Below are positions 3,375-18,241 of a DNA stretch of 64,000 nucleotides, piece by piece. A program made the translations under genes and the position numbers. The stretch lies in the IMG/VR virus record IMGVR_UViG_3300046167_000825, positions 1-64,000 of that record. One strand, 5' to 3'. Positions within the stretch are counted from its first letter, which is position 1, and each line of letters begins with the position of its first letter. Below the pieces are notes generated by a model that was given only the letters and a program-made list of their open reading frames with translations, did no database searches and was not told where the DNA came from.

Positions 3375-4118
3375 ATGACTACAAATCAATCAGAGCCAAT
3401 CGTTACGGATAAGGGTATTGCTTGGACTAGCAAGACTTGGAATCCGATGACGGGTTGTTCCAAGATATCCCCAGCATGCAAGAACTGTTATGCTAAAACC
3501 CTTGCAGATCGAATGAAACTTCATCCGAACGCTAAAGTGGCAGATAGATACCGTCACGGCTTCACTCCAACTCTCCAAGCCGATAAACTCGGTGAGCCAT
3601 ACAAGTGGCGTGGTTCTCACTGGGTGTTCGTAAACTCAATGAGTGATATCTTCCATGAGGACTTTTCTTTGGCTTATATCCAAGCCGTATTCGATGTCAT
3701 GAACCGTACTCCCCAACACAACTACCAAGTCCTCACAAAGAGGTCAGAGCGTATGCTGGAACTGTCAAAGCATCTCACTTGGTCAGACAATATTTGGATG
3801 GGTGTTTCTGTTGAAGATCAGAAGCGACAGTATCGTATCGAACATCTTCGTCAGATGCCCACAGAGAACCGTTTCTTGTCTATTGAGCCTCTCCTAGAGC
3901 CTTTACCCTTCCTAGACCTCACGGGCATTGGCTGGGTTATTGTAGGGGGCGAGAGTGGCAAAGGACATAGACCTATCAAAGAGAGTTGGGTGACACCTAT
4001 CCGTGATTACTGTTTGCGTGAGAGTATTCCGTTCTTTTTCAAGCAGTGGGGTGGAGCGAGATCAAAATCTAATGGTAAGGAACTTCAAGGGCAACAATGG
4101 TGCGAGATGCCAGCCTAG
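3375..4118 (+). CDS. Phage Gp37/Gp68 family (DUF5131) radical-SAM-like protein
   Basis: IAWTSKTWNPMTGCSKISPACKNCYA, FVNSMSDIFHE, QVLTKR, FLSIEPLL, WVIVGGESG and PFFFKQWGG are hallmark motifs of the family. Confidence 0.92.
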   Translation: MTTNQSEPIVTDKGIAWTSKTWNPMTGCSKISPACKNCYAKTLADRMKLHPNAKVADRYRHGFTPTLQADKLGEPYKWRGSHWVFVNSMSDIFHEDFSLAYIQAVFDVMNRTPQHNYQVLTKRSERMLELSKHLTWSDNIWMGVSVEDQKRQYRIEHLRQMPTENRFLSIEPLLEPLPFLDLTGIGWVIVGGESGKGHRPIKESWVTPIRDYCLRESIPFFFKQWGGARSKSNGKELQGQQWCEMPA

Positions 4119-4141
4119 TCTGTTTTTTAAGCATGATCTTG

Positions 4142-4186
4142 CCTAGAGTTTTTCGGTGTTTACTCGAAAAACTCTAGGTTTTCTTT
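4142..4186 (+). terminator. Intrinsic terminator
   Basis: CCTAGAGTTTTTCG / CGAAAAACTCTAGG 14-bp stem followed by TTTTCTTT. Confidence 0.75.
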
Positions 4187-4396: not shown

Positions 4397-4672
4397 ATGA
4401 TTGAAGTTTATATCTATCCCGTCACGGGAAAACCTTACATGAAACAAATCTCTGACAGTCTTGAAGGGCTACAACAAGTCGTGGGGGGTTATATTGAAGT
4501 GGCGAGACATCCCGCCACCGAAGTCGTGTCTTTCGCTTTCAATGACAAGAACCCCCCGAGAGTCTTACTCATCGTCAATGAGAATGGCTTGTTGGAAAAA
4601 CTCCCCCCTAACGAGAATATCGGTGGCATTGTGGGTCAGTGTTTCTTTATTCGTGACACCGATTTCAAGTAG
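4397..4672 (+). CDS. DUF3846-like protein
   Basis: SLEGLQQVVGGYIE...LIVNENG...LPPN...IVG pattern; AAGGAG RBS. Confidence 0.75.
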   Translation: MIEVYIYPVTGKPYMKQISDSLEGLQQVVGGYIEVARHPATEVVSFAFNDKNPPRVLLIVNENGLLEKLPPNENIGGIVGQCFFIRDTDFK

Positions 4673-4734: not shown

Positions 4735-6132
4735 ATGAGTGGACACAACTGGACATCAGCCAATGAGTACCCACATTCTCCCGTCAATGCCACAGTAATG
4801 ACTGGTTTTGAAGTGGGGATTGTGGATCTACGGTGGGATGACCCCTCCATTCTTCAAACAGCCCCCACTGCTTATGGTGGGAAGACCAATGCTGGTTGGG
4901 ATATCGTTGGGTGTAATGTCTATCGGAGTGACGATGGTGATAGAGGCCCTTTCAAGAGATTGAATCAGCACCCCGTTTCCTCTTTGTTCTGGCGTGATTT
5001 CACGGAGAATATCTGGATCGAGCAAGAGAAGGTCGATTTGTCTGATTGGGTTTCGAGAGGTTATGGTGAACTGGGTGCGTGGCAGTTCAAACTAAAGAAT
5101 CCTCCCATTGTTAAGAAGGGTGGTCAGAAGATTCTTGCAAATGCTCCCAATGATGTGGTTCTTCGGATTAACGGTCAGATTGTTCCTATCCATAGTGTGG
5201 ATGGTGCAAGTGGTCTCGTGACATTGATAGACCAAAAAACTTATGATATCGCTAGAGAGAAACATATTGATCCCATACTCCCTAGCGAAACAGACTCCGT
5301 AGAGATTTCTTATTGGAGGAATGTCAATGTGGTTCGTCACAACTTAGATTACAAACATAAGGTGTGGTATCGAATAACAACAGTCGCCAAGAGTGAGGAC
5401 ACCCCTTCTGGTTTGGTTGAAACTCCCTTGAGTTTTTGTGAGCCAGTGTCTATGGTTCAGAAAGAGCCTTTGGACTACATTTGGAAAGAAGCCCTCAGAC
5501 GAAATAACTGGATACTAGAGCAAGGTGGGGAACGAGTGAAACTGTTCGTGAGGAAACGGTCGGGTATCACTTGTCATTGTGATTATGATGAAACCCTCAT
5601 GGAAATGTCCAAACAACCCTCCAATAGGTGTGAGCGTTGCTTCGGCACGGGCTTTGTGGGTGGTTACGAAGGCCCCTACGAGGTCATTGTGTGTCCAGAC
5701 GATGGTGAAGTGAATATTGTTCAGACAGATAGGGGTCGAAATAAAGAACACACTTACGAGTGTTGGATAGGCCCCACACCGAGTGTTTCTCAGAAGGATT
5801 TCATCTTGAAACAAGACGGAGATAGATACTCCATTGGGGCAGTTCGCAGACCTTCAAACAGAGGGAATCTATTGAATCAGTTCTTCACTATCGGATACCT
5901 TGATGAGGCAGATATTCGATACCGAGTTCCGATTACGGGTATCAGTGAGAATACTTTCCCCGAAACTAGATACCCCACCGAACTACAATATGAGGAACAC
6001 AATAAAGAAGTCCCTTATCCAGTTGGTGCAGACAATCCTCAGTCGAATCCTCAGATCACCCAAAAAGAAAACATTCCAGATGAGCGAGAGAAAAGAGGTC
6101 GCACGCCCGTTTGGGAAAACCAGAATTATTGA
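4735..6132 (+). CDS. Probable neck/head-completion structural protein with Zn-binding Cys cluster
   Basis: FN3-like N-terminus; a domain shared with the sheath repeats; CHC...CERCFGTGFVGGY; position at the start of a structural operon. Confidence 0.5.
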   Translation: MSGHNWTSANEYPHSPVNATVMTGFEVGIVDLRWDDPSILQTAPTAYGGKTNAGWDIVGCNVYRSDDGDRGPFKRLNQHPVSSLFWRDFTENIWIEQEKVDLSDWVSRGYGELGAWQFKLKNPPIVKKGGQKILANAPNDVVLRINGQIVPIHSVDGASGLVTLIDQKTYDIAREKHIDPILPSETDSVEISYWRNVNVVRHNLDYKHKVWYRITTVAKSEDTPSGLVETPLSFCEPVSMVQKEPLDYIWKEALRRNNWILEQGGERVKLFVRKRSGITCHCDYDETLMEMSKQPSNRCERCFGTGFVGGYEGPYEVIVCPDDGEVNIVQTDRGRNKEHTYECWIGPTPSVSQKDFILKQDGDRYSIGAVRRPSNRGNLLNQFFTIGYLDEADIRYRVPITGISENTFPETRYPTELQYEEHNKEVPYPVGADNPQSNPQITQKENIPDEREKRGRTPVWENQNY

Positions 6133-6134
6133 TT

Positions 6135-6569
6135 ATGCCAAGTGTTTTAATTGAAATACCCTTTAAGGAATATGCCGAACTGTTTTCATTGAAGTCTGAC
6201 GATTTCATGAAGGTTTACGCAGAGGTTAAACGAGATTTGTTGTTTGAAACTCGAAGAGAGTTCGACAATTATCGGGTTCGTGCTGGCGTGACACACAAGG
6301 GCTTCATCAAAACCATTTATATATCAGATCAGATGCACACGCTCCGAGTCATGATTCCCGATGACATCCCCTCCCCCTCAAACAAGAAGATTATAACGCT
6401 AACCAAGTTCGGTTCGCCTATGGTAGTCACAATGCCTCTCACAACAGACAAAATGTGGATATCCAATGGTATCACGAAGAACACTTTCTTAACTCGCATA
6501 GAAACAAAATACACGGCTATTTTAATCGGGGAACTCTATAGGGAGAAAGTTCGGAGGACATTCCTATGA
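6135..6569 (+). CDS. Hypothetical protein (possible neck component)
   Basis: ATG 2 bp after upstream stop; 4-bp overlap with next gene. Confidence 0.6.
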   Translation: MPSVLIEIPFKEYAELFSLKSDDFMKVYAEVKRDLLFETRREFDNYRVRAGVTHKGFIKTIYISDQMHTLRVMIPDDIPSPSNKKIITLTKFGSPMVVTMPLTTDKMWISNGITKNTFLTRIETKYTAILIGELYREKVRRTFL

Positions 6570-7201
6570 GAATCGCTAGAGTAAAATGTTTGAGAGGTCG
6601 TCTTTCAATTCCTTCGTTGGGTATCACCCTTTTGAAAGGGCAAGAGCATGAGTTCACCTCAACTCAGTTCGCTCAAAGTGTAGAGTTACAGAAGGCATCT
6701 CAAGTCAATCAAATCACCGTACAATGGAGAACATCAATGTCTAAGAAACAAGTTCGCCCCCGACATGTGTCGGCATCTAGGGGAGTCAAAGCGAATCCTC
6801 AAAAAAGAGCCACCCCACCAGCAACCTCAAACGAGGCATTGAAGCAAACAATCCAACGAGAAGTCGCCCAGATGAAGAATGAACTGGTAGGGGAAATAGC
6901 CAAGATGCTAGGGGGGATGACGGGTGGTGTTAATGCCGAACAGATGGCTACCATGATAAACCAAGCCGTTGCCTCCAACATGCCCTCAACCATTACCACT
7001 TCGGGGAAACCCCAAGAATCTTCGGAATCTTCCATGATTGATGATTCCGAACCGTTATACATCCCCTCTGGTTTAACAAACACGGGTAATATACAAGGTG
7101 GTTCTGTGTCTGTGTCTTCTGTTAGTTCGGAGGATACCTCTTTAGAGGATGCTGCTTCAGCACTCCGTGCCATGAAGAAAAACCGAAGAAAAAACAAATA
7201 A
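6566..7201 (+). CDS. Hypothetical protein upstream of actin; S/T-rich linker and basic C-terminal helix
   Basis: GGAGG RBS, coupled to neighbours; ends SLEDAASALRAMKKNRRKNK. Confidence 0.7.
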   Translation: MRIARVKCLRGRLSIPSLGITLLKGQEHEFTSTQFAQSVELQKASQVNQITVQWRTSMSKKQVRPRHVSASRGVKANPQKRATPPATSNEALKQTIQREVAQMKNELVGEIAKMLGGMTGGVNAEQMATMINQAVASNMPSTITTSGKPQESSESSMIDDSEPLYIPSGLTNTGNIQGGSVSVSSVSSEDTSLEDAASALRAMKKNRRKNK

Positions 7202-7216
7202 TAAGGAGAACTAATT

Positions 7217-8221
7217 ATGTCGAAAAAACAACTAGGTGTCGGTCTTGATATCGGAACAATGAACATTGTGTCTGCCCGTCAAGGCGATAGTAAAAAAACC
7301 CTCATCTCTCGTATCCGAGATGCCTTCCTTGACCTCGATCTCTCAGCAAAGAAGATGTTGAAACTCTCTGGTGTGGATTTCATCGAACGAGAAGATGAGA
7401 TTCTTATTATTGGAGATGCCGCTCTCGAAACAGCCAATGTCTTTGGTCAAGAAGCAAGACGACCTTTATCACAAGGTTTGATCAGTGCTGGTGAGATTGA
7501 TGCCATTGAAGTACTTGGTATTCTCATCAAGCATGTGTTGGGCGAACCAGCAGAAGAAAATGAGGTTTGCTATTTCAGTATTCCCGCTGCCCCCGTTGAT
7601 GACCTTAGCCGTGATGTTATCTACCACGAGGGAGTCTTTGAGAGAATCGTTTCTGAGTGTGGTTACGAGGCTGTGGCTAGTAATGAGGCGATGGCTATTA
7701 TCTTCTCCGAATGTGCCAAAGAAGGTTTCAGTGGATTGAGTATTTCTTTTGGTGCTGGTATGTGTAACATTGCCCTTGCTGTTAACACCATCGAAGGTCT
7801 TTGCTTTTCGGTGGCACGGGGTGGTGATTGGATTGACGCTGGGTCAGCCAGAGCAACTGGTTCGACACGCTCGAAGATTGTGACCGTGAAGGAAAGTGGG
7901 ATTGATCTTCTTAATCCCAAGACTCGTGAGGAAGAAGCCCTTGCTGTCTATTACAAATCCCTCATTGAGTACTGCTTGAAGAATGTAGCAAACGAGTTCA
8001 AGAAGATTAAAGGGCGTTTCAGTTTGCCAAAGCCCATCCCTTTGGTGATTAGTGGGGGAACTAGCAAGGCTGGTGGTTTCGTGGAGTTCTTCCAACAAGT
8101 CTTTGAGAAGCAACGCAAACGCTTCCCTATCGAAGTGTCCGAAATCCGTCACGCCAAAGACCCTCTCAATGCCGTTGCTCTAGGTCTTTGTATCCAAGCC
8201 CAAACTGAATACGATGAATAA
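7217..8221 (+). CDS. Actin-like ATPase (MreB/MamK/ParM/FtsA superfamily)
   Basis: Phosphate-1 VGLDIGTMNI, connect-1 SNEAMA, phosphate-2 SISFGAGMCN, adenosine VISGGTS, connect-2 DPLNAVALG; 334 aa. Confidence 0.9.
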   Translation: MSKKQLGVGLDIGTMNIVSARQGDSKKTLISRIRDAFLDLDLSAKKMLKLSGVDFIEREDEILIIGDAALETANVFGQEARRPLSQGLISAGEIDAIEVLGILIKHVLGEPAEENEVCYFSIPAAPVDDLSRDVIYHEGVFERIVSECGYEAVASNEAMAIIFSECAKEGFSGLSISFGAGMCNIALAVNTIEGLCFSVARGGDWIDAGSARATGSTRSKIVTVKESGIDLLNPKTREEEALAVYYKSLIEYCLKNVANEFKKIKGRFSLPKPIPLVISGGTSKAGGFVEFFQQVFEKQRKRFPIEVSEIRHAKDPLNAVALGLCIQAQTEYDE

Positions 8222-8222
8222 A

Positions 8223-8339
8223 ATGACGGATGAACAAATAAAAAAAATAGATGCCCGAGTCAAAAAAGGCGAGGCAACCGAAGAAGACATTGAGATTCTT
8301 ACGGATTACTTCAAACTATTTATGGATGAACTAGGCTGA
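8223..8339 (+). CDS. 38-aa mini-ORF not in the ORF track (MTDEQIKKIDARVKKGEATEEDIEILTDYFKLFMDELG)
   Basis: Starts 1 bp after the actin stop; TGATG overlap with the next gene. Confidence 0.65.
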   Translation: MTDEQIKKIDARVKKGEATEEDIEILTDYFKLFMDELG

Positions 8340-9526
8340 TGTATTACCAACTGACCAGTGCCATCAAGAGAAGAATGATTCTCGAACTACGGAGATATTG
8401 GGCTTCACACCCCAAGTTTTCTGACCTTGTAGATAACATACAAGGGAAGTACTCTTTTAGAGAACGACCTCAACATGGGATTATCGTTAAGACGGGTTCA
8501 GCCACGAAGGTGAATCTGTCTGCCGATAACTTTCAAGGCACGGTTTGGGCACATTGCACCCTCACTTTGATTGATAACTATGCTGGGACAGCCATTGAAT
8601 GGGTGAGGGAAGACCCTTTCGCCATTAAGAAGCACGGCAAGTTCCCCTCAAAGGCTGGTGTCTATTATATCGAACTAACAGCAGACAATGAGTTCTATGT
8701 CGATCCTCTCCTTGATATTTATCGTGAGCGACTAGATCAGTTGTCCTCAACACAGTTCTCATTACAGAACACACCCCTTGACGGAACTTTAAGAATCTAC
8801 GAGATGCCTAGCAATCTCGTGATGTATGAAACAACGAACTACACCTTTGATAAAGCAACCAACATTGTCACTCTAACCAAACCCCTCCCAGAAGGTTTGT
8901 CTCTGTCTGCTGATTATCGTTACCCCCTTGAATCGAGAGGCCCCTTCCCGATTAAGGCGAACTATTCCAATCGAACTGCCATTGAAGGGGTCATCATTGC
9001 TTTTGGGAGAAGATGCACGAAGGGTGACCGAATGGCGATAATGATTTCCCCTTACCGTGAACCCGTTGCTTTGGAATACGGTGGTCGATGGGAACTGTCA
9101 TTGGACTTCGATATTATCGCTAGAGATGTTTTCGCTCAACAAGAGATATCGGATTCGACTGTCATGTATCTGTGGGCTGTCTCAAGGTCATACCTCGTTA
9201 ATGAAGGTATCAATGTCACGGATGTTTCTCTCGGAGGGGAAAGCGAGGAGGCATACGACCAAACGGGTGACGACTACTATTATATGTCGAACTTCAGTAT
9301 GACAGTCGAAACCGATTGGGCAGTCTATGTTCCCCTCACAGCAAGAATCCGTAGGGTTCTTCCAGAAGACCTCTCTGAAAATCGGAAATCGGCTGGGATG
9401 ACAGACGAAGAATTAGCCACTGAAACCCTAGAAACTCGTTTGAAAGTCGTGGAAGAACTTGGTCTCCGAGAACTGTCTGATCCCTACTTCAAAGGGAAGG
9501 GTGTCAACTTTGAAACCATCAAATAA
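8339..9526 (+). CDS. Probable tail terminator/completion protein with inserted beta domain
   Basis: Operon context; beta-strand C-terminus (WELSLDFDIIARD...NFSMTVETDW) resembles tail-completion folds. Confidence 0.45.
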   Translation: MYYQLTSAIKRRMILELRRYWASHPKFSDLVDNIQGKYSFRERPQHGIIVKTGSATKVNLSADNFQGTVWAHCTLTLIDNYAGTAIEWVREDPFAIKKHGKFPSKAGVYYIELTADNEFYVDPLLDIYRERLDQLSSTQFSLQNTPLDGTLRIYEMPSNLVMYETTNYTFDKATNIVTLTKPLPEGLSLSADYRYPLESRGPFPIKANYSNRTAIEGVIIAFGRRCTKGDRMAIMISPYREPVALEYGGRWELSLDFDIIARDVFAQQEISDSTVMYLWAVSRSYLVNEGINVTDVSLGGESEEAYDQTGDDYYYMSNFSMTVETDWAVYVPLTARIRRVLPEDLSENRKSAGMTDEELATETLETRLKVVEELGLRELSDPYFKGKGVNFETIK

Positions 9527-9597: not shown

Positions 9598-10002
9598 ATG
9601 ACTACTTTACAACAACTTGACCAAGCGACACTCCAACGCATTGACGAGGTTATGACTCGTCACTGCTTGGAGATGGCTACCAAGATGGCATCCCCTACTT
9701 GGGAGCGACATATCTATTGGGTGATGACTCTTCAACACTTCTGTGAGTGGGAAGACATCGACAATAACTTTGGTCGCAATCAGTCGATTCTCGGATACCC
9801 AGAGAACATCTATTTTCATCATCAAGGGTGGCTTCACTTTGTGGGTGAGAACAGTTCCCACAAGTTCTTTGCTCAGAAACGGGCGAAGGGGTGGGTTCTC
9901 TTCTCTTTGTGTTGCGACAATGACGAGGTGGGTTTTCATCAAATCACAAGCCCCTCAGCCTATACTGGGAAACTAGGTTGGGATATCGACATCCAAGCCT
10001 AG
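9598..10002 (+). CDS. Hypothetical protein
   Basis: GGAGG RBS behind the repeated promoter. Confidence 0.7.
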   Translation: MTTLQQLDQATLQRIDEVMTRHCLEMATKMASPTWERHIYWVMTLQHFCEWEDIDNNFGRNQSILGYPENIYFHHQGWLHFVGENSSHKFFAQKRAKGWVLFSLCCDNDEVGFHQITSPSAYTGKLGWDIDIQA

Positions 10003-10015
10003 ACTCATTCTGAGT

Positions 10016-10218
10016 GTGTGAAACCAATTATCCAATCTGCAACTTTTTGAACATTTATGCAAAAAACCAAACAATTTCTGCAAGAAAAATACATAAATCC
10101 GTATTTTTCTGCAAGAAAATGAAAAAAACTGCAAAAATCCGTCAAAAGTTGCAGAAAAATCCATATTTCTGCAAAAAAACCTAAAAAGTTGCAGATCGGA
10201 TTTGGGATTGTTTCACAC
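10016..10218. repeat. AT-rich element with terminal inverted repeats and eight phased TGCA cores
   Basis: GTGTGAAAC/GTTTCACAC and 18/19-bp IR (10030-10048 vs 10183-10201); TGCA at 10038, 10058, 10079, 10110, 10130, 10150, 10170, 10190. Confidence 0.85.
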
Positions 10219-10253
10219 CAAAAGTTCTGTATATTTTTCATAAGGAGTTTAAT

Positions 10254-10706
10254 ATGAAAATAGTTAATCACTGTGACAGATGTTCTCGTGAACTCTGTAC
10301 ATGGCAAATGAGCCGTTTCAATACGCAAGACTGTTGCTTTCGCTGTATCGATCTTGAGAAGAAGCACCCTCGTTATCAAGAGGCGTATGAGGCTGAACTT
10401 GCAGAGGTGACTCGTGGGAATCACAACTACAAGGGCATAGGTCTTCCTCGTGACCTTGAAATCCAATCAAAGGTCACTCTCAGCCCCCAGTTCTACTTGG
10501 AGTCCAATGAGCAACTCTTGTTTCTCGGGAACTATTCGGGGGTTGATGCTTATTTTAATCCCGACAAAGGGGAACTTGTCCATAGAGTTCACTCTAGGAC
10601 TCGAACAATTTCTTTGTCTGTTGTTAAAGCCTTGCCGACAGACTCCAACCAATACATCTATTGGGAAGACACCCTACACCTCTTGAAATTATGTGATCTA
10701 GACTAG
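10254..10706 (+). CDS. Hypothetical protein with N-terminal Cys cluster (CDRC...CCFRC)
   Basis: TAAGGAG RBS; MSRFNTQDCCFRC...NYKGIGLP. Confidence 0.7.
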   Translation: MKIVNHCDRCSRELCTWQMSRFNTQDCCFRCIDLEKKHPRYQEAYEAELAEVTRGNHNYKGIGLPRDLEIQSKVTLSPQFYLESNEQLLFLGNYSGVDAYFNPDKGELVHRVHSRTRTISLSVVKALPTDSNQYIYWEDTLHLLKLCDLD

Positions 10707-10759
10707 TGCGGTTGCACTTTTAAGAAAGACCCGTATAAGAAGTGTAAGCAATCAACATT
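10707..10759 (+). promoter_or_regulatory. Repeated early-type promoter cassette, copy 2
   Basis: TGCGGTTGCACTTTTAAGAAAGACCCGTATA...CAATCAACATT; TTGCAC-N16-TATAAG is sigma70-like. Confidence 0.75.
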
Positions 10760-10774
10760 GACTGGGAGGTCATT

Positions 10775-10933
10775 ATGTCTAAGACTGTAAAGCACTATTC
10801 AGAAGCCAAAACCACACGAAGGGAACGAAAGTTCCTCGTGGGCTTTAATCGCTACCACAAGAACTGTGTCAGACGCTTCAACCGTTCTGACCGTCAATCC
10901 ACCAAAGCAACTCTCAAAGCCCTTGTCGGCTGA
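10775..10933 (+). CDS. 52-aa very basic mini-ORF not in the ORF track (MSKTVKHYSEAKTTRRERKF...)
   Basis: GGGAGG RBS directly behind promoter copy 2. Confidence 0.7.
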   Translation: MSKTVKHYSEAKTTRRERKFLVGFNRYHKNCVRRFNRSDRQSTKATLKALVG

Positions 10934-10971
10934 GGGGGTTGCCTCTGGTTGGAGGGGTAAACAGATTCTTG

Positions 10972-10985
10972 ATAATCTGTTTATA
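10972..10985 (+). promoter_or_regulatory. Putative late promoter motif ATAA-N6-TATA
   Basis: ATAAtctgttTATA before the 11008 ORF. Confidence 0.6.
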
Positions 10986-11007
10986 ATAATGAGAGAAAGA
11001 AAGGAGC

Positions 11008-11556
11008 ATGACAATGAAACGACATTTACTGGCTTTGTTAAACCGAACTCGTGGGGGACACATGTTCCACGAGGTGCAGAAGCGAATCAACGGAACTCAA
11101 GACTCTGCTGAAATGAGTGCTCAAGAAATGGAACAATGGTATCGGTTCGTGACCAATGCCGTAGAAGATGCCAAGATGTCAGCACAGAATAATCCTCGTG
11201 GTTTTGGTCGATATGCCCAACGAGTTGCTACTCGATATCTTGAAGCGAGAATTGATATGGATGGCACTTTGAAAGATGCCCCTAACAGTCAAGATTGGTG
11301 GGATGGTGTGAGCAATCTTCTGGCTCAGTACGTTTCAAGAAAAAGGGGTCAGAGAGTTACTGATGTGATTCGTGTAGTTCAACCCAATGGTTTCACACAC
11401 AACTGGGGTGGGGTAGAAATCACACTGATCGAGAATAATGGTCGGGTGGATTTTCTTGTTAATGGGAAGAGCCACGGCACATCTAGGCTAAACGATTCTT
11501 ACACCACCAAGAGAATGGTTACAGTTCTTAAAAAGACCTACAAGATATTTAATTGA
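11008..11556 (+). CDS. Hypothetical two-domain late protein with internal RYAQRVATRYLEA tag
   Basis: AAGGAG RBS; motif shared with other late ORFs. Confidence 0.72.
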   Translation: MTMKRHLLALLNRTRGGHMFHEVQKRINGTQDSAEMSAQEMEQWYRFVTNAVEDAKMSAQNNPRGFGRYAQRVATRYLEARIDMDGTLKDAPNSQDWWDGVSNLLAQYVSRKRGQRVTDVIRVVQPNGFTHNWGGVEITLIENNGRVDFLVNGKSHGTSRLNDSYTTKRMVTVLKKTYKIFN

Positions 11557-11617
11557 AAGAGGGCATCGAACTAATTCGCTTTTCAAGAATCTAAATGACC
11601 CCCGAAAGGGCTGTGGG

Positions 11618-11803
11618 TTATGCCCACAGTGATTCATCCAGCCCGTAGGTCTTATAGATTTCCTCTCCGATTGCCGTTGGTTTCCCCTCAGCATCTGCCC
11701 AACACAGTTCCAAATACAGTGCTTTTTCAAAAGGTGTTAGTTCAGCAGTTGACATGGTCATATATTCGCACCAGTCAATAATGATATTTTTCATTGCAGC
11801 CAT
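11618..11803 (-). CDS. Small hypothetical protein
   Basis: TAGGAG RBS; last gene of a - strand mini-operon. Confidence 0.65.
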   Translation of the reverse strand: MAAMKNIIIDWCEYMTMSTAELTPFEKALYLELCWADAEGKPTAIGEEIYKTYGLDESLWA

Positions 11804-11812
11804 GATAATCTC

Positions 11813-11932
11813 CTATGGGCATCCGTGTATGCCGAATAAATGTGTGATAGTGTGGAAAAAGAAGTGGATGACACCACCAATGACGGGCAGAGAAGCCAGC
11901 CATAGGTAGTATCGAGTGAGTAGTTCTTTCAT
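11813..11932 (-). CDS. 39-aa hydrophobic, His-rich membrane peptide not in the ORF track
   Basis: MKELLTRYYLWLASLPVIGGVIHFFFHTITHLFGIHGCP; fills the gap between flanking - strand genes. Confidence 0.55.
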   Translation of the reverse strand: MKELLTRYYLWLASLPVIGGVIHFFFHTITHLFGIHGCP

Positions 11933-11935
11933 TGG

Positions 11936-12139
11936 TTACCCCCAGTAGTGATGGTCTGTGTCGCCACAAACATATTGATTTGCAAAGCGTTCTTCCAACT
12001 CAGCCAAGTACGCCTCATCACGAGCCTTGTCCTCAGCGAGTTGTTGTTGATATTGTTCGATGTCACGGTCGATTGCCTCTTGAGCATCGACATCGACATT
12101 GTGAATGGTTGGAATGGTTGGAATGGTTTGAACTGTCAT
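11936..12139 (-). CDS. Small acidic coiled-coil protein
   Basis: TAGGAG RBS behind promoter copy 3; TIP-TIP-TI N-terminal micro-repeat. Confidence 0.7.
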   Translation of the reverse strand: MTVQTIPTIPTIHNVDVDAQEAIDRDIEQYQQQLAEDKARDEAYLAELEERFANQYVCGDTDHHYWG

Positions 12140-12171
12140 GATATTCTCCTATGAATGTGATTGACACTATC

Positions 12172-12202
12172 TATACGGGTCTTTCTTAAAAGTGCAACCG
12201 CA
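12172..12202 (-). promoter_or_regulatory. Repeated early-type promoter cassette, copy 3
   Basis: Exact 31-bp reverse complement of copy 2 (10707-10737). Confidence 0.78.
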
Positions 12203-12234
12203 ACAGCCATCAACCTAGAATCTGTTCAGAGGAC

Positions 12235-12261
12235 AAAAAAAATGGGAGGCGAACCTCCCAC
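12235..12261 (-). terminator. Intrinsic terminator (- strand)
   Basis: TGGGAGG-CGAA-CCTCCCA preceded by an A tract, i.e. a UUCG hairpin plus U tract on the - strand. Confidence 0.75.
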
Positions 12262-12280
12262 TCAAACTCTTTCAATATAT

Positions 12281-12463
12281 CTAAGCGATACGGAACATGT
12301 GTCTTTCAGCAAACGACTTGGCATCCTTGAGCGATTTCGCTTTGTGGATGGCAGACCTATCCCCTCTCTTAAAGAACACCACCCACTTGCTAGAAACCTT
12401 TTCAATCTCATATCTACCACAAGTGACACAGAGGTGGATATCCCGTGTTTTCAGCCAAATCAT
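12281..12463 (-). CDS. Small basic hypothetical protein
   Basis: 4-bp overlap with upstream gene. Confidence 0.6.
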   Translation of the reverse strand: MIWLKTRDIHLCVTCGRYEIEKVSSKWVVFFKRGDRSAIHKAKSLKDAKSFAERHMFRIA

Positions 12464-12744
12464 ACACGACCCCCTTGAGAATCCAAGATGGTCTTCTCGG
12501 TGTTGTTGAGAACGGCTCTACCACTCTCTCGCACTTTATTACGAACTTCACGGTAGGTGGGGGCTTTGAGATTGAGGGTGTTATCTCCCTCTGGCGTGTG
12601 GATAACGCACTGTGTTGCGAGACCCTTCTGGGTGAAGGTCATAGACCAACCATCACCATTGACGGTGATGTACTCTTGGGTTGTTTCAATATTGACCGTT
12701 TCTCGGTCATTTGTCTTGTTAATTAAAATATGCTCTAGTTTCAT
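12460..12744 (-). CDS. Hypothetical protein
   Basis: TAAGGAG RBS; CGTATA element upstream. Confidence 0.7.
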   Translation of the reverse strand: MKLEHILINKTNDRETVNIETTQEYITVNGDGWSMTFTQKGLATQCVIHTPEGDNTLNLKAPTYREVRNKVRESGRAVLNNTEKTILDSQGGRV

Positions 12745-12815
12745 GGGTAATACTCCTTATGGGGGGGTGACATCTTTTATACGCAAAGCCAAACATAAAA
12801 CGATCCCTCTTTTGA

Positions 12816-12829
12816 ATAATCCCCTTATA
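12816..12829 (+). promoter_or_regulatory. Putative late promoter motif ATAA-N6-TATA
   Basis: ATAAtcccctTATA. Confidence 0.6.
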
Positions 12830-12853
12830 TATTCTTTGATGTAGGAGAACCTA

Positions 12854-13288
12854 ATGCCCCAATACGAGTTTCAATGTGATGAATGTGGTTTGTTATTCAT
12901 GAAAAAGATGAGTTACGGCAAAGCCAAGTCCATAGATTTCACAGTGGCATGTCAGTGTGGAGTGTCGGTCAGACGGAAGATGACTGCACCCAATTATCAG
13001 TTTTCCCTTACCCCCACCTCCACCGATCCACAAAACACGGGCGTGTATTCATTTGATACAAATGTCGACCGAGTTATTGGAAAGGACTCAGAGGAAAAGT
13101 GGAAAAAAATTGAAAAAAGACAAAAAGAAAAACATTCTCTTTTACGAGACAACCCTAACAAGACTGGCTTTGATATCAGAAGACGACTTGATAACCACTA
13201 CGAAATTGCACCAAGCCAAGAACGCACCGCCTATGAAAAAGGCATGAAGGTTGTGGCTGAGACAAAGAGTAAGGGGAAGAAAATATGA
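12854..13288 (+). CDS. FmdB-family zinc-ribbon protein
   Basis: MPQYEFQCDECG...CQCG...RRKM N-terminus. Confidence 0.8.
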   Translation: MPQYEFQCDECGLLFMKKMSYGKAKSIDFTVACQCGVSVRRKMTAPNYQFSLTPTSTDPQNTGVYSFDTNVDRVIGKDSEEKWKKIEKRQKEKHSLLRDNPNKTGFDIRRRLDNHYEIAPSQERTAYEKGMKVVAETKSKGKKI

Positions 13289-13361: not shown

Positions 13362-16300
13362 ATGGCATTCCCAAGTTCAATCTATGCACCCCCAAGTGTT
13401 TACACCAAAACCAATTTTGATTCACCTTTGAGTGGAGCATTGGCTGGTGTGAAGATTCCAGTTCTCATTGGAACGGGTAGCGAAATCTTATCACAACCCG
13501 ATCTTGAGTTAGTTCGAGGTTCTAGTTCTAGTGTCGACCAACAAATTGTCCAAGAAGACATGTCGGGTCGCATTGTGGCTTCTGAGTTGGCTTCGGGAGA
13601 AGTCGTTCTCGGTTCTTATGACGGAACAACAAACCAAGTTCAAGTTCGCAACTTCCCGATAGTCACTGGGGATGGTTCTGGAACAACTACCACCAAACCA
13701 AGCGATGTCAGTGTTTCTCTAAATGGAGAACCCGTTGTTGTTTTGGCTATTGATGGAGCGAAGGGATTATTGACACTTTCTGAATCACCGAAAATGGGAG
13801 ATTCTTTGAAGGTGACCTACTTCTTCAATCGAACTGACACTTTGACAACCGATGAGGTTTCTGCTCAAGTTTCTGAGGATTCTGCTTTGGTTTATCTAGC
13901 GAAGGCTGGAAACTATAAAGTATTCCCATCTTCTTCTGATACTCTCCTTCTGACTGTTGATGGGGTTTCCCTCGTAATAACTCTCGTTGGGGATGCTTCA
14001 AATGAAATCACAGCGGCTTCTCTCGTCACTCAGATTAAGTCTGGTGCTGGGGTGACTTCTCTTGATGCCACAACATACACCAACAACGAAGGGAACACTT
14101 CTGTGGCTCTCTCTGCTGATAAAGAGATTGTTGTTGGTAGTGGTTCTGCAAACTCTTCTCTTGGGTTGTCTGCTGGAACATCGACTGGTCGTAACAAGAC
14201 TTTTTATGTCTTCAATGGCCCTATCGTAGATGGTTCTAACGGCGGTGTTACAACTACTGATGTTGCTGATGTGACTGTCAAGGTAGATGGGGTTCAAGTT
14301 ATTCCGTCTAGCGTTGATGGGTTCTCTCGTGCTGTGACTTTATCTGTGCCACCCGCTAATGGAAGCACTGTCACTATCCAATACTATTTCAACACTTGGC
14401 AAGATACCTTTGATTATCTCGCACACACGGGTATCACTGAAGTGACTCTTGCTGGCTTCTCGGCTGGGAAAGGTGATTTCATTCAAGGTGTTGATTTCAT
14501 TCTTAAAGATGACAAGATTCTTTGGGGAACGGGTGTTATCGTTGAAACTTCTGTTTCATCTCAAGGATATTCTCTGTTTGGTGAGAACCAAATCACAGCG
14601 AACTTGGTTGATAACAAAGGATACCTTGAGCCTTGTTCTGCTGTTGTTGATACTTCCGTATCTCCAGCGAAAGAAAGCAAGACCGAGTTCAGACTTCCTT
14701 TCGTACCAACCACTGGAAATGGTCGTGGAACTCCAATCGGGATTTCATTGTTCCAAACAGTATCTAATGGTCGTATTGATCTCCCAACAAATCGCCCCGA
14801 CCTTGTGAAAGCATATTGGGGATTCTCTATTCAAGACGCTCTTGATCGTGGGGAAGTTTCAGTTCTGTCTGTTGATCATGCAAGTGCTTCTATCACTCTC
14901 CGTGACCCAGTTCCTACTGGTGCTATGGTTTGGGCTACACAGTATTACAATGTCATTCAAGATTCTGAGTACTCTGTTGTTTGTGAAACTGCTGGTGTTT
15001 CTGGTGTGGGGACATACTCCATCTCAGACAAGAGTGGTTCTGGACTTGTTATTCCTCAGTTCGTTGCAAAGAGTGCTGGATTATCTACTGTCACTATCGA
15101 GTTCCCAAGTGGGTCTGAATTGTTGAGTGATGTTCGTTATGAAACACCACACAACACCAAGTCCTTCAGTGGTGCAGTCGAAGAAGAAATCACGGTTACT
15201 TTTTCTGACAAAGCAGCAACTCCAGCGGCACATACTTTCAGTTCGACTGGCGAGTTCGCTTTCATTGACGGACAAAGTGATAGCATTGAGATTACAGTTG
15301 ATGGCGTACCCGCTTCTTCTGCTCTTTCTGCTGTGGCACACCAAGCACACATCACTGGTGCAGAACTCGTTTATGGCGATCCCTCTGCTCAAACAATGAA
15401 TGTTTCTGCTGGTCTCGATGATTCTCTCATTCTCACCGTTGATGGTTTGCAAGTTGATGTCACATTGACCTCTGGTGCTACAGTTGCTATCGGTGATTTG
15501 ATTGACGATATCAATATGGCAGTTGATGGTCAGATTCCTCGATTGACTGGTGCGAGCAAGTTCGTGAGTGCTTACGAGATTACGGCAGACAATAGCGATT
15601 TTACAATCAATGTCGATGCTACTCCTCATGCTATCTCCATTGATCTTGGCTCTTACCCTACGGCTTCTGCTCTTGTGACTAACATCCAATCCAAGATCGA
15701 TGCAATTCCCGCTATCGATAGTGGTGCTGGTACAGATGTCAAAGTTGTTGCGGCAGTTGATTCTTCTGGACATATCTACTTTACTTTTGAGCGAGTGGGT
15801 AATGTTGAGAAAGCGAAACTGACTAGTGCAACTCAATGGTTGAAGCAGTTCGGATTCGATGAGAGCGAACTGTTCATCGGTAATGGTCTTGGTGGTTGGT
15901 TCGCTTGTGCGACATTGGACTCAATGCCAACTGTCGGTGGTGACTCGTACTATGACCGTATCATTCTCCGAAACCGTATTCTCCCAGCAGATAAACTAGG
16001 GGAAGCCCAAGCAAGTATTCAGATTGATGTGACGACAGCCCAAGATATTCTAGGGTTATCTATGGCTCAGTATGGTGAGGCACACGCTACCACTACTGTC
16101 AAACCAGCCTCTCTTGTAGGAGAAATCGGTTTAACTGGCTCACAAGCAACTGGTGATGGTGCATACCCACAAGTGACCTTGTATCCAAGTGGTTCTACCA
16201 ATCCTCAGAACAACATCCTTCTTCTGACTATTGATGGAACAACACACGAGGTTGTCTTCACACAGAAAGACGGAACTGCTTTGACTGAATCTGGTCATGA

Positions 16301-18119
16301 TGTTCCTTTGTCTGACACGGGTCTAAACGAGGGTATCGTTGAGCAAATCAATACTCAAGTTGGTTCTTCCGTTGCTACTGTTGAAGGGTTTGGAATCCGT
16401 ATTTCTTCTCTGTCACAAGGCACAGAATCTTCTGTTATTGTTGGTCAAGGCTCATCGAACTCTATTCTCGGTCTGTTGGATAATCAATCTGCCGAGAGAG
16501 AACTGGTTTCTGTTGGTTGTCTTGCTTCGGCTCTTATTCAGACACCGATAACAGCACATTTCGCTGTTATCACAGACAGTGCTGGGACTGAGTACTTGTA
16601 TATGCAATCAAAGACTTTGGGTGTTTCCTCTAACATCTCTTATTCTGATGGAACATTGAGTCGCATCGGAACGGGTTTCACTGATTCAATCGGTGATGGT
16701 GGTGTTGGTGAAAGTGGTAAGAGTGGTTTTTATGTCACATCCAATATCTCTAATGGTTCTGGTTCGGTTGCTACTTCTTTGTTGAGTGGAACTGGAGTTG
16801 GGCAAGACGGTGTTGTTGGACAAACTTATCGTGACCTCGCAACGGGATTGACATTCACTGTCCTCCCACGGGCGACTGGCGTGAATTACCCCGCTGGTAC
16901 TTTGACTTTCAAAGCGAGCAAAATCGTTACAACTGATGCCAATCTTCCAGTTTCTACTGTGAAGGGTGTGTCTTTGATTGTAGCGAATACCGAAAGCCTT
17001 AACGCTGGGGATTCTGCTTCCGTTGAAACATTCCAACGAAGTGGTGAGCAACCAGAAGTTGGGGACACTTACTACTCGTCTTACAAGTACGCCAAGCAAG
17101 ACTTCACTCCTCGTTTATACACCAAGTTCAATGCAGTTGAGGCTGCCTTCGGTGAACTAGACCCAACAAATCCTCTGACTTTGGCTTGCTATCTAGCGAT
17201 GACCAACGGTTCTATCCTTGTAGGATTGAAACAAGTCAAGAAAGATGAGTTGGTGGTCAATGGTGAATATACACAAGCAAGTGTTGTCGCTTACCGTGAT
17301 GCCATTGATGAAATGGGTGGAACATTCGCTAGTGGAACAACACCAGACATCCTAGTTCCCCTTCGTGGAGATTCTTTGGAACTGTACCAGTACATGGCTC
17401 GTCATGCTAACATCCAATCTTCTATCCGATACAAGTCCGAGCGAACTGTAATCGCTGGGGTTGGTGCTGGAACGAAGCGTAAAGATGTCCAAGCGTGGGC
17501 AACAGCAATCAAGGAAACTCGTTTCCGTTTGTTGTACCCAGATATGGCTTACCTCACCATCACAGATGCTTTCGGGAAAGACCAACGACACCTAGTTGAT
17601 GGAACATTCGTTGCTGCTGCTTGGGCGGGGGCAGTTGTTGCACCCACAAAAGATGTAGCGACACCGTGGACTAACTCAAGAGTCTTCGGATTCGATTCTT
17701 TGGCTCGAACTAGCGATGCCGTTCAGAAGAACCAACTTGCTGTTGCTGGGATTACTGTCCTTGAAGACATCCCAAATGCTCTTAAAGTTCGTCACGGTCT
17801 CACCACTGACATGAGTAACATTGTAACCAAAACACCGACAGTCATTCAGATTGCCGATGAGGTACAACAACTCGCTCGCACTGCTCTCGATTCATTCGTG
17901 GGCGTGAAGTTCCTCCCAAGTATCACTTCTCAAATCGAAGGGAAGTTGGCTATGGTTCTGAAAGAACTTGTCCGTAAAGACATCATCGCTGGTTACACTG
18001 GTATCACTGCCAATGTCAATCCCGATGACCCAACAGTTGCAGAGGTGCAAGCGGCATACCAACCAGTATTCCCATTGTTATACCTCGTAGTGACATTCAA
18101 CCTAAGAGCAAGCCTTTGA
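13362..18119 (+). CDS. Contractile tail sheath protein, very long, with many inserted domains
   Basis: N-terminal YAPPSVY..IPVLIG; C-terminal sheath core (QKNQLAVAGITVLE, VRHGLTTD, LDSFVGVKF, DPTVAEVQAAYQPVFPLLYLVVTF). Confidence 0.9.
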   Translation: MAFPSSIYAPPSVYTKTNFDSPLSGALAGVKIPVLIGTGSEILSQPDLELVRGSSSSVDQQIVQEDMSGRIVASELASGEVVLGSYDGTTNQVQVRNFPIVTGDGSGTTTTKPSDVSVSLNGEPVVVLAIDGAKGLLTLSESPKMGDSLKVTYFFNRTDTLTTDEVSAQVSEDSALVYLAKAGNYKVFPSSSDTLLLTVDGVSLVITLVGDASNEITAASLVTQIKSGAGVTSLDATTYTNNEGNTSVALSADKEIVVGSGSANSSLGLSAGTSTGRNKTFYVFNGPIVDGSNGGVTTTDVADVTVKVDGVQVIPSSVDGFSRAVTLSVPPANGSTVTIQYYFNTWQDTFDYLAHTGITEVTLAGFSAGKGDFIQGVDFILKDDKILWGTGVIVETSVSSQGYSLFGENQITANLVDNKGYLEPCSAVVDTSVSPAKESKTEFRLPFVPTTGNGRGTPIGISLFQTVSNGRIDLPTNRPDLVKAYWGFSIQDALDRGEVSVLSVDHASASITLRDPVPTGAMVWATQYYNVIQDSEYSVVCETAGVSGVGTYSISDKSGSGLVIPQFVAKSAGLSTVTIEFPSGSELLSDVRYETPHNTKSFSGAVEEEITVTFSDKAATPAAHTFSSTGEFAFIDGQSDSIEITVDGVPASSALSAVAHQAHITGAELVYGDPSAQTMNVSAGLDDSLILTVDGLQVDVTLTSGATVAIGDLIDDINMAVDGQIPRLTGASKFVSAYEITADNSDFTINVDATPHAISIDLGSYPTASALVTNIQSKIDAIPAIDSGAGTDVKVVAAVDSSGHIYFTFERVGNVEKAKLTSATQWLKQFGFDESELFIGNGLGGWFACATLDSMPTVGGDSYYDRIILRNRILPADKLGEAQASIQIDVTTAQDILGLSMAQYGEAHATTTVKPASLVGEIGLTGSQATGDGAYPQVTLYPSGSTNPQNNILLLTIDGTTHEVVFTQKDGTALTESGHDVPLSDTGLNEGIVEQINTQVGSSVATVEGFGIRISSLSQGTESSVIVGQGSSNSILGLLDNQSAERELVSVGCLASALIQTPITAHFAVITDSAGTEYLYMQSKTLGVSSNISYSDGTLSRIGTGFTDSIGDGGVGESGKSGFYVTSNISNGSGSVATSLLSGTGVGQDGVVGQTYRDLATGLTFTVLPRATGVNYPAGTLTFKASKIVTTDANLPVSTVKGVSLIVANTESLNAGDSASVETFQRSGEQPEVGDTYYSSYKYAKQDFTPRLYTKFNAVEAAFGELDPTNPLTLACYLAMTNGSILVGLKQVKKDELVVNGEYTQASVVAYRDAIDEMGGTFASGTTPDILVPLRGDSLELYQYMARHANIQSSIRYKSERTVIAGVGAGTKRKDVQAWATAIKETRFRLLYPDMAYLTITDAFGKDQRHLVDGTFVAAAWAGAVVAPTKDVATPWTNSRVFGFDSLARTSDAVQKNQLAVAGITVLEDIPNALKVRHGLTTDMSNIVTKTPTVIQIADEVQQLARTALDSFVGVKFLPSITSQIEGKLAMVLKELVRKDIIAGYTGITANVNPDDPTVAEVQAAYQPVFPLLYLVVTFNLRASL

Positions 18120-18182: not shown

Positions 18183-18241
18183 GTTGGTATGCAAGTTCAA
18201 CTCAAAATGGTATAATGCTCAAAACTTCGGTGGAGGGTGTT

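Follow-up and report, generated by a model that had tools for sequence, protein, structure and literature searches.

The known phage-encoded cytoskeletons are tubulins (PhuZ and TubZ), plus a few actins that act on DNA (AlpC, plasmid-prophage Alps). Why, then, does a marine huge phage encode an actin homologue within a neck/tail gene block, and do the neighboring genes act with it? Here, we report the analysis of this locus in the window (64,000 nucleotides, the first 64 kb of the 289-kb IMG/VR record IMGVR_UViG_3300046167_000825). The original prediction described a phage actin homologue lacking the usual phosphate-2 Asp, embedded between probable neck and tail-completion genes without a promoter gap, and interpreted it as a late-expressed system for capsid/tail trafficking or assembly, with the upstream open reading frame (ORF) as adaptor and a downstream 38-amino-acid (aa) peptide as regulator. 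The observation was confirmed. The interpretation was supported only in part: the actin homologue, its virion gene context, and a very probable binding partner upstream hold, the regulator role is not supported, and late expression, polymerization, and capsid or tail trafficking were not examined and are inferences.

The three ORFs (all on the plus strand) span 6566 to 7201 (211 aa), 7217 to 8221 (334 aa), and 8223 to 8339 (38 aa). Gene junctions are tight. ORF 6566-7201 overlaps the stop of ORF 6111-6569 (ATGA); 15 nt separate 7201 from 7217 and carry a Shine-Dalgarno sequence (AAGGAGA, 7203 to 7209, 7 nt before the actin start codon); the ATG at 8223 follows the actin stop by 1 nt; and the stop at 8339 overlaps the start of the next gene (TGATG). 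No convincing terminator or promoter was found between about 4400 and 9526, while a strong terminator-like hairpin (4141 to 4179, plus strand, 16-bp stem plus T run) probably marks the upstream boundary of the transcription unit that holds the actin.

The 334-aa protein is a member of the Volactin family of actins. It matched Pfam PF25216 (E value, 2.6e-71; 241.2 bits against a cut-off of 35; 3 to 320 of 321 profile positions), far beyond chance and with no other family at an E value of ≤0.01; a search of the whole record returned the same single locus. A structural model (AlphaFold; pLDDT, 95.1; pTM, 0.92) had as its best Swiss-Prot match volactin of Haloferax volcanii (D4GU28; E value, 4.9e-39; TM, 0.93; rmsd, 1.7 Å over 332 residues; 38% identity, with 38 to 41% across comparisons), followed by MreB, Mbl, salactin, and MamK (TM, 0.6 to 0.73). 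The best PDB structural matches were the filament formers MamK, MreB, BeeR, FtsA, and actin, whereas a PDB sequence search with the actin found no relatives. The nucleotide-binding motifs were as predicted: phosphate-1 is D11-I-G-T14, phosphate-2 is S177-F-G-A-G181, with Ser where MreB, ParM, and actin have Asp, and the adenosine motif is G280-G-T282. The missing Asp is neither degeneration nor a phage peculiarity, because S177 is invariant in all 141 viral, archaeal, and bacterial members examined, including haloarchaeal volactins, together with D11, G13, T14, E157 (the catalytic-site Glu), G179, G181, N184, G203, D204, D207, G280, and G281 (family signatures DxGT, S-F-G-x-G-M-x-N, GGDWxD, and GGT). 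Comparison with other actin families had been proposed as a check, and the nearest relative is volactin, not MreB, ParM, or AlpC; the viral actins form their own deep clade. MreB, Mbl, and MamK share the fold (TM, 0.6 to 0.74) but only 13 to 18% identity (13 to 17% for MreB/Mbl in structural alignments), with no MreB_Mbl or ParM/StbA Pfam match at an E value of ≤0.01. Dynamic filaments in vivo have been shown only for H. volcanii volactin (PMC10869688), and filament formation by the phage protein was not assayed. The family is widespread, with 2,350 matching clusters at 90% identity on contigs up to 337 kb, and 98 viral loci were found. DNA of the window recurs in seawater metagenomes from many studies.

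Synteny in related phages, which had been named in advance as a test of the prediction, is conserved across a large, globally distributed, and deeply diverged clade of uncultured huge phages. Gene order is F1, F6, F4, (Dps-like F9), actin, F2, F3, and sheath, where F numbers denote the families of neighboring proteins. F1 (4735 to 6132, plus strand, 465 aa) is always upstream of the actin block (about 60 actin loci) and has an FN3-like N terminus, a DUF2460-like beta domain, and an invariant Cys4 site; its role is unknown. The 152-aa ORF at 6111 to 6569 (plus strand) occupies the position of F6 (~176 aa) in relatives, but a profile of F6 did not match it. The predicted neck identity of these two upstream genes could not be verified: PHROG and Pfam scans gave nothing for 4735, 6111, 6566, and 8339 beyond a small DUF2460-like domain, PDB sequence searches with profiles of F1 and F2 found no relatives, and structures of F1 and F6 were not predicted. 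Downstream, F2 (8339 to 9526, plus strand; 62 loci) is a neck or tail-terminator-like protein with a tube fold and an inserted DUF2460-like beta domain (model pLDDT, 83), and the predicted tail-completion role is thus supported by fold. Foldseek matched it to phage 812 neck chain G (probability, 1.00; E value, 1.1e-7) and to neck chains of Bas63, E217, Sf14, Pam3, and Pa193, although global TM is low (0.2 to 0.4) because of the inserted domain and a long hairpin; an Atlas feature search likewise led to SP10_terminator, Gp37, and T4-gp15. F3 (12854 to 13288, plus strand) is a conserved 144-aa zinc-ribbon protein that precedes the sheath gene in relatives. The 1,585-aa tail sheath protein (13362 to 18119, plus strand; phrog_2839, E value 1.7e-27 on residues 1183 to 1581) carries N-terminal repeats of a decoration domain, an ~80-aa beta domain shared with F1 and F2, and baseplate genes lie at 34.9 to 39.5 kb.

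The upstream ORF (6566 to 7201; family F4) is the candidate volactin adaptor. Alignment of the family showed an N-terminal ~55-aa domain (6566 to 6730, residues 1 to 55), a variable Pro-rich or coiled linker, a PxFIP motif (7052 to 7066; P163-L-Y-I-P167, with P167 invariant and P163 nearly invariant), and a C-terminal amphipathic helix of the AAxALRxLRKK type plus a basic tail (7139 to 7198, residues ~192 to 211, L200 invariant). Of 58 actin loci with enough upstream DNA, 57 carry F4 with both motifs, and in 24 of them F4 ends within 42 nt of the actin start; one actin locus (L064) has an F4 with the FIP motif but no recognizable helix. Among loci retrieved with F2 instead, 43 of 43 actin-positive loci have full F4, whereas none of 10 actin-negative loci has the C-terminal motif. 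Five of these 10 (and two further loci with less upstream DNA) keep a 124- to 167-aa F4 with the N domain only, directly upstream of the neck gene. On the F2 tree, actin presence changes at least 4 to 6 times, and the motif changes the same way in 4 of 4 (well-supported branches) or 6 of 6 independent pairs, although a sign test cannot reach 0.05 with 4 pairs. The N-terminal domain matched nothing known, an Atlas search with it gave no lead, and its fold was not predicted, so the cargo is unknown; it is the presumed cargo- or module-binding part.

Modeling of the actin with the F4 C-terminal helix had also been set out beforehand as a check. The complex with F4 residues 150 to 211 passed its controls (score of 0.62 in three runs, against 0.00 for the best of 3 controls), a mark reached by 58 of 80 solved complexes and 2 of 110 mismatched pairs. 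Partner contacts are residues 166 to 171, 174 to 201, and 203 to 204, and the peptide is predicted to bind across the subdomain IA/IB face and the IA-IIA ("barbed-end") cleft. The score is a model's confidence obtained with our own alignments, and because peptide-in-cleft complexes of actins are solved (ParM-ParR, actin-WH2), the pass may partly reflect memory; nor are the predicted interface residues on the actin more conserved than the rest of the protein (0.56 versus 0.61 mean identity). Further evidence came from haloarchaea, where a profile of the F4 C terminus hit 25 ORFs (best E value, 3.4e-7 in a 16,954-ORF database), of which 22 end 43 to 241 nt upstream of volactin on the same strand. 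These ORFs are of the HVO_2016 type, a CdpA-like protein with four transmembrane (TM) segments already noted as adjacent to volactin (PMC12126565), and end in an amphipathic DDAxxxLRxLR-type helix. The motif match is short (23 to 25 columns; hhalign E value of 2e-4 and probability of 47%), and the complex of H. volcanii volactin with HVO_2016 was not modeled. The link to bacteria is weaker, resting on hhalign (E value, 5.5e-4; probability, 30%) and on inspection by eye, and a reverse profile from six bacterial partner C termini did not retrieve phage F4.

The 38-aa acidic peptide (8223 to 8339), although translationally coupled to both neighbors, is not supported as an actin regulator. It was found only in the three closest lineages, in one of which it is separated from the actin by another ORF while remaining next to the downstream neck gene, and thus it tracks that gene rather than the actin. 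Its weak PHROG head closure and Pfam EAD10 hits (E value, ~0.004) are below any threshold. An alternative start at 8214 would give 41 aa, but homologues start at the Met of 8223.

Our preferred explanation, held with moderate confidence, is that the phage replaced the membrane anchor of the archaeal partner with a virion-module domain. In this view, the actin, in which all nucleotide-binding signatures of the family are intact, most likely forms ATP-dependent dynamic filaments, as H. volcanii volactin does, and filament ends are coupled through the F4 C-terminal peptide to a neck or tail assembly intermediate, or to whatever the N domain binds. The filaments would then position, move, or organize virion parts during late infection, in the way ParR couples cargo to ParM filament ends. 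Family membership, conserved context, covariation of the motif with the actin, and motif sharing were demonstrated here; binding rests on modeling alone, and polymerization, timing, and cargo are inferred, with no experiment existing on any viral member. If the mechanism holds, very large phages would use actin-based logistics for virion assembly. It would also yield a testable hypothesis for an open question in archaeal cell biology, namely, what anchors volactin filament tips, which contact the membrane (PMC10869688); the candidate is the C-terminal helices of HVO_2016. The peptide-actin pair is small, soluble, and easy to test in vitro.

Among known systems, the closest is volactin (VolA, HVO_2015) with HVO_2016, which shares the Pfam family, the signature residues, the two-gene layout with the partner directly upstream on the same strand, and the partner's terminal helix motif. 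The phage gene differs in lying in a neck/tail virion block rather than a cellular shape locus, and F4 has a small soluble N domain without hydrophobic segments in place of four TM helices (the haloarchaeal hydrophobic domain was read by eye from an alignment) and one helix copy in place of two or three. ParM/ParR (type II plasmid partition) and Alp7A/Alp7R are similar in working principle, pairing an actin-fold filament with a small adjacent adaptor whose C-terminal helix is thought to engage the filament-end cleft and whose other domain defines cargo, but their actin family differs, their adaptor is downstream, and the context here is virion genes. AlpC/AlpA of the Corynebacterium glutamicum prophage CGP3 is a phage-borne actin homologue with an adjacent adaptor (PMC4446434); AlpC acts on viral DNA replication and is not in a structural operon, and no sequence relation was detected, Volactin being the only Pfam match, although no direct comparison was run. 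The PhuZ tubulin spindle of nucleus-forming jumbo phages (Chimalliviridae) is a phage-encoded cytomotive filament that carries capsids, the function proposed here for the actin, but has a tubulin fold and no known dedicated adaptor with a virion-module domain. No tubulin domain (PF00091) was found in the 289-kb record, which is about 66% complete. Literature searches on volactin and PF25216, on actin in huge or jumbo phages, and on phage-encoded actin found no description of the present system.

Of the alternatives, all unlikely, remodeling of the host cell survives best. Phage volactin may build a scaffold that changes the shape, size, or internal organization of the infected cell, for example to make room for very large virions, with F4 as nucleator, capper, or anchor and the tail-block position serving only late coexpression. 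Cellular volactin is a cell-shape determinant (PMC10869688), huge phages with large virions are the only viral carriers seen (contigs up to 452 kb), and, without a tubulin gene in the record, any internal organizer would have to be something else. However, the F4 N domain is a fixed member of the neck/tail block even without the actin, which points to a virion-linked partner rather than a host envelope target, and F4 has no membrane-binding element.

Slightly less likely is a ParMRC- or AlpAC-like system that moves or segregates phage genomes or replication complexes, with F4 as the DNA-binding adaptor, whose basic tail or N domain would bind phage DNA. The architecture is that of ParM/ParR, the modeled peptide lies in the cleft region that ParR uses, F4 and its actin-less short forms end in a Lys/Arg-rich tail, and the only characterized prophage actin, AlpC, acts on viral DNA replication (PMC4446434). 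Against this, no DNA-binding domain (RHH or HTH) was recovered in 40 F4 members, only scattered coiled-coil noise. No iterons or centromere-like repeats flank the genes (no repeat arrays between 4000 and 9600); the nearest repeat cluster (10030 to 10201) lies 1.8 kb away in an insertion absent from relatives. The pair is also fixed inside the neck/tail block, where the F4 N domain stays when the actin is absent.

Doubtful too is a virion component, built into the neck or collar or packaged and delivered into the next host. The genes are translationally coupled to virion genes, and the decoration domain shared by F1, F2, and the sheath indicates that the block encodes particle proteins. However, no actin-fold protein is known as a phage structural protein, every nucleotide-site residue of a dynamic cytoskeletal actin is kept, and closely related phages assemble the same block without it. 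A nonpolymerizing ASKHA ATPase acting as an assembly chaperone for neck or tail proteins, with the F4 peptide as client or cochaperone handle, is the least likely, because although the fold is shared with Hsp70-type chaperones and the phosphate-2 Ser could alter the catalysis cycle, the protein is 38 to 41% identical to a dynamic filament former (PMC10869688) that has the same Ser, and its nearest structures are all filament formers rather than Hsp70 or sugar kinases.

A bolder extension of the preferred explanation is not excluded but is unlikely on present evidence. A short filament-end-binding peptide (FIxP followed by an AxxALRxLRK helix) would be a portable volactin handle used across archaea, bacteria, and phages on interchangeable cargo domains, fused in huge phages to a neck/tail-module protein. 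A symmetric ring of handles on a tail or neck intermediate would then ride on polymerizing actin filaments. That would be the first actin-driven transport or assembly machine for virion parts in a prokaryotic virus, and a direct clue to how archaeal volactin is anchored to the membrane.

Two minor observations concern the genes around the actin. An RNA library holding part of the window gave only two 151-nt contigs in the 8339 gene, which is uninformative for expression of the actin. Stop-codon recoding in relatives, suspected from apparently fragmented sheath genes, was rejected, as the fragmentation was an artifact of ORF calling (ORFs running off a locus end were dropped) and one frame is open for more than 1,300 codons.

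The 289-kb IMG/VR virus record whose first 64 kb form the window was estimated to be 66% complete, and its DNA recurs at near identity in seawater metagenomes from many studies, so it is a real marine huge phage. The open reading frames (ORFs) lie where the original prediction placed them, at 6566-7201 (211 aa) and 7217-8221 (334 aa), followed by a small ORF ending at 8339, whose conserved start is the ATG at 8223 (38 aa). Junctions were tight: the ORF at 6566 overlaps the previous stop, the actin ATG at 7217 is preceded by AAGGAGA, the ORF at 8223 follows the actin stop by one base, and the stop at 8339 overlaps the next start. A strong hairpin terminator was found at 4141-4179, with nothing comparable between 4400 and 9526. 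This terminator separates the block from DUF5131 (E 5e-91) and DUF3846 proteins just upstream (3375-4118 and 4397-4672). The observation of an actin homologue tightly linked to two flanking ORFs held.

The 334-aa protein matched a single Pfam family, Volactin PF25216 (E 2.6e-71), and a search of the PDB returned no sequence relative. An AlphaFold model built on 62 homologues was confident (pLDDT 95.1, pTM 0.92). Against Swiss-Prot models, the best match by far was Haloferax volcanii volactin (TM 0.93, rmsd 1.7 Å, 38% identity), with MreBH, salactin, Mbl, FtsA, and MamK following at TM 0.6 to 0.73; against the PDB, the best matches were MamK, MreB, BeeR, FtsA, and actin, all filament formers. 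We aligned 141 distinct members from viral contigs, haloarchaea, other archaea, and bacterial metagenome-assembled genomes (MAGs), among which the nucleotide-site residues were invariant, including the Ser at the first position of phosphate-2. The earlier claim that SFGAG lacks the usual Asp is correct, but this is a family trait, shared with the archaeal protein that polymerizes and depolymerizes in living cells (PMC10869688).

The family is large in metagenomes, with 2,350 matching clusters at 90% identity (all unnamed) on contigs up to 337 kb, whereas only two deposited phage records hold it, both uncultured huge phages (485 and 595 kb). Phylogeny had been named beforehand as a check on the prediction, and in a maximum-likelihood tree the huge-phage sequences formed one deep clade, which also took in a few contigs binned into MAGs that carry phage gene order; a second, distant viral clade, a bacterial MAG group, and the haloarchaeal clade lay on the other side. 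Four contigs falling with the phage clade (loci L081, L082, L083, and L087) are labeled as Thermoplasmata, Legionellales, “uncultured bacterium,” and Thermoplasmatales MAGs. They carry an F4-like motif or ORF (F4 being the family of the 6566 gene) directly upstream of the actin, and L082 and L083 show the full huge-phage gene order. All four are probably phage contigs binned into MAGs. The volactin homologues nearest to the huge-phage clade, from Planctomycetota MAGs, are followed by a 204- to 234-aa ORF (L084:7086-7700 and L085:6998-7702) ending in a Gly run and a conserved helix (...QLEMQKTQLTAILSILQRR), which may be yet another partner type. In the second viral clade (L070 to L080; actin 34 to 38% identical), the context differs: a 91- to 108-aa ORF directly upstream ends in a conserved P(K/R)IETSFGxxRIGxV peptide, and a ~350-aa ORF follows the actin. 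This may be a different handle for a different volactin clade.

Synteny in related phages, also proposed in advance as a test, was examined by all-against-all clustering of ORFs in 79 viral loci, which gave the conserved order F5, F1 (the window’s 4735-6132 gene), F6, F4, sometimes F17 and F9, the actin, variable small ORFs, F2 (8339-9526), F3 (12854; zinc ribbon), and sheath (13362). Family F9, absent from the window, occurs in one subclade (L027:5303-5947, L029:5227-5958, and about 20 other related loci) as a ~232-aa protein between F4 and the actin; its consensus (HHWxTRGxxFYGDHLLFxRLY ... IDxxAER) looks Dps/ferritin-like by eye and is an unexpected companion inside the neck/tail block. Several findings support reading the block as a tail module. 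The sheath assignment rests on phrog_2839 (1.7e-27), and baseplate wedge homologues lie at 34.9 to 39.5 kb. F2 was folded (pLDDT 83), and its best PDB matches were neck chains of phage 812 (E 1e-7) and of Bas63, E217, Sf14, Pam3, and Pa193, followed by tail tube proteins, in agreement with a feature-based lead to tail terminators. F1, F2, and the sheath N terminus share an ~80-aa DUF2460-like beta domain (...VDGxxGxVTL...), as expected for particle proteins; it is inserted in F1 and F2, is repeated several times in the sheath N terminus (13362 to ~14400), and resembles a domain of the gene transfer agent (GTA) distal tail protein (PDB 6tba). F1 and the ORF at 6111 were not identified, so the predicted neck gene upstream was not confirmed, whereas the predicted tail-completion gene downstream is supported.

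The 211-aa partner family (F4) evolves fast. Direct BLAST found it in 9 loci and a deep protein search found 18 clusters, while transitive clustering and hidden Markov models (HMMs) recovered it widely. Its alignment showed a ~55-aa N-terminal domain, a variable Pro-rich or coiled linker, a PxFIP motif (P167 invariant), a C-terminal amphipathic helix of the type AAxALRxLRKK (L200 invariant), and a basic tail. Four lines of evidence tie the C-terminal peptide to the actin, the first being adjacency. Out of 58 actin loci with at least 1.5 kb upstream, 57 carried F4 with both N and C motifs in one ORF, and in 24 of them it abuts the actin. A further 78 loci were retrieved with F2 instead of the actin, of which 53 have at least 5 kb upstream of F2. 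All 43 with the actin had full-length F4, and none of the 10 without it had the C-terminal motif; 5 of these 10, plus 2 further loci with less upstream DNA, kept a 124- to 167-aa F4 consisting of the N domain, a Pro-rich linker, and a basic tail, directly upstream of F2; the set forms a natural deletion series. On the F2 tree, the actin state changed at least four times on well-supported branches and six times on the best tree. Although the sign test cannot reach 0.05 with four pairs, the motif changed the same way in every independent pair (4 of 4, or 6 of 6).

The interaction with the C-terminal helix, whose prediction had likewise been named as a test, was modeled as a complex of the actin with F4 residues 150 to 211, which scored 0.62 in three runs, against 0.00 for the best of three controls. 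That mark was reached by 58 of 80 solved complexes and 2 of 110 mismatched pairs; these counts hold only roughly here, because our own alignments were used. The partner residues in contact were exactly the conserved FIP motif, the stretch after it, and the helix. On the actin, contacts included residues 163 to 171, 190 to 191, and the last helix (322 to 330), although these interface residues were not more conserved than the rest of the protein. If E157 corresponds to actin Q137, they map to the hydrophobic cleft between subdomains IA and IIA, which ParR and WH2 helices use; that mapping is inferred.

The motif also recurs next to cellular volactins. An HMM of the F4 C terminus hit 25 haloarchaeal ORFs in a 16,954-ORF set (best E 3.4e-7), of which 22 end 43 to 241 nt upstream of volactin on the same strand. 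These ~300-aa proteins have a hydrophobic N-terminal domain, an acidic linker, and two tandem copies of the helix, and profile-profile comparison aligned only the helix (E 2e-4, probability 47%). They are of the HVO_2016 type; HVO_2016 has been called “CdpA-like,” with four predicted TM segments, and noted to lie adjacent to volactin (PMC12126565), but we found no report of the same C-terminal helix motif on a huge-phage protein in the literature searched. In six bacterial MAG or single-amplified genome (SAG) loci from five phyla, a small ORF adjacent to the volactin gene ends in FIDP, about 25 residues, and then an AVxALRKL-like helix. Statistical support for homology with the phage peptide is weak, and these “cellular” loci may themselves be mobile elements; two near-identical partner proteins occur in bins of different phyla. 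In one Salinarchaeum MAG (L121:3114-4466, minus strand), the same C-terminal helix motif as in the 4-TM partner ends a 450-aa beta-propeller-like protein, 1.5 kb from volactin and on the other strand. The handle thus appears on different N-terminal domains.

The 38-aa peptide (8223-8339) is a real, conserved small ORF with 14 of 39 positions invariant across three lineages, but it exists only in the window and its closest relatives (those with actin at least 87% identical). In one of those lineages, a 146-aa ORF separates it from the actin, while it stays directly upstream of F2; in most relatives, F2 follows the actin directly or after unrelated small ORFs. It has no Shine-Dalgarno sequence of its own and bridges two overlapping junctions. 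Nothing links it specifically to the actin, contrary to the regulatory role first suggested for it.

The original interpretation, a late-expressed actin system for capsid/tail trafficking or assembly with the 6566 product as adaptor and the 8223 peptide as regulator, is thus supported only in part. The analysis itself establishes a volactin-family actin with an intact nucleotide site, fixed in the neck/tail block of a large huge-phage clade, and an upstream protein whose C-terminal peptide covaries with it; binding of the peptide to the actin rests on the model alone, and everything about activity, timing, and cargo is inference. In the mechanism we propose, the actin polymerizes like volactin, and the peptide engages filament subunits at the cleft exposed at one end, as ParR does on ParM, which matches volactin filaments that touch the membrane only by their tips (PMC10869688). 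The phage would have replaced the membrane anchor with a virion-module domain, and filament ends would then be coupled to a neck or tail intermediate. If that intermediate is a six- or twelve-fold ring, it would present a ring of handles, much like ParR on parC. The biological output (moving tails or heads, organizing an assembly zone, or something else) was not determined, and the host was not identified. Alternatives include host cell remodeling and DNA positioning as in ParMRC or AlpAC, the latter weakened by the lack of any DNA-binding domain or iterons in our searches and by the persistence of the F4 N domain in the structural block without the actin. A virion component is a further alternative, and a non-polymerizing chaperone is weakened by the close relation to a filament former.

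Full-text searches on volactin, PF25216, actins of huge or jumbo phages and megaphages, and phage-encoded actin found only the archaeal work and the paper on AlpC of CGP3. A multi-omics paper on phage G reports a tubulin-like gene, and a term search of it found no mention of actin or MreB. The Volactin family is already known, and what is new is its viral clade and, relative to other actin-adaptor systems, an actin paired with a peptide handle grafted on a virion-module protein. No tubulin domain occurs in the 289-kb record.

Downstream of F2, about 3.3 kb of small ORFs (134, 150, 182, and 105 aa and others; 9598-12850) separates F2 from F3 in the window, whereas F3 follows F2 directly in most relatives; this looks like an accessory insertion in the tail block. 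An intergenic cluster at 10030-10201 holds four direct copies of ATTTCTGCAA(G/A)AAA and several inverted arms. The motif occurs nowhere else in the window at this stringency and could be an operator or promoter region of the inserted small-ORF block. A 3,376-aa ORF on the minus strand (51021-61151) was not analyzed. Directly after the sheath gene, a 513-aa ORF (18215-19756) combines a Ros/MucR-type zinc-finger domain with an HNH or homing-endonuclease-like C terminus and is probably a mobile endonuclease.
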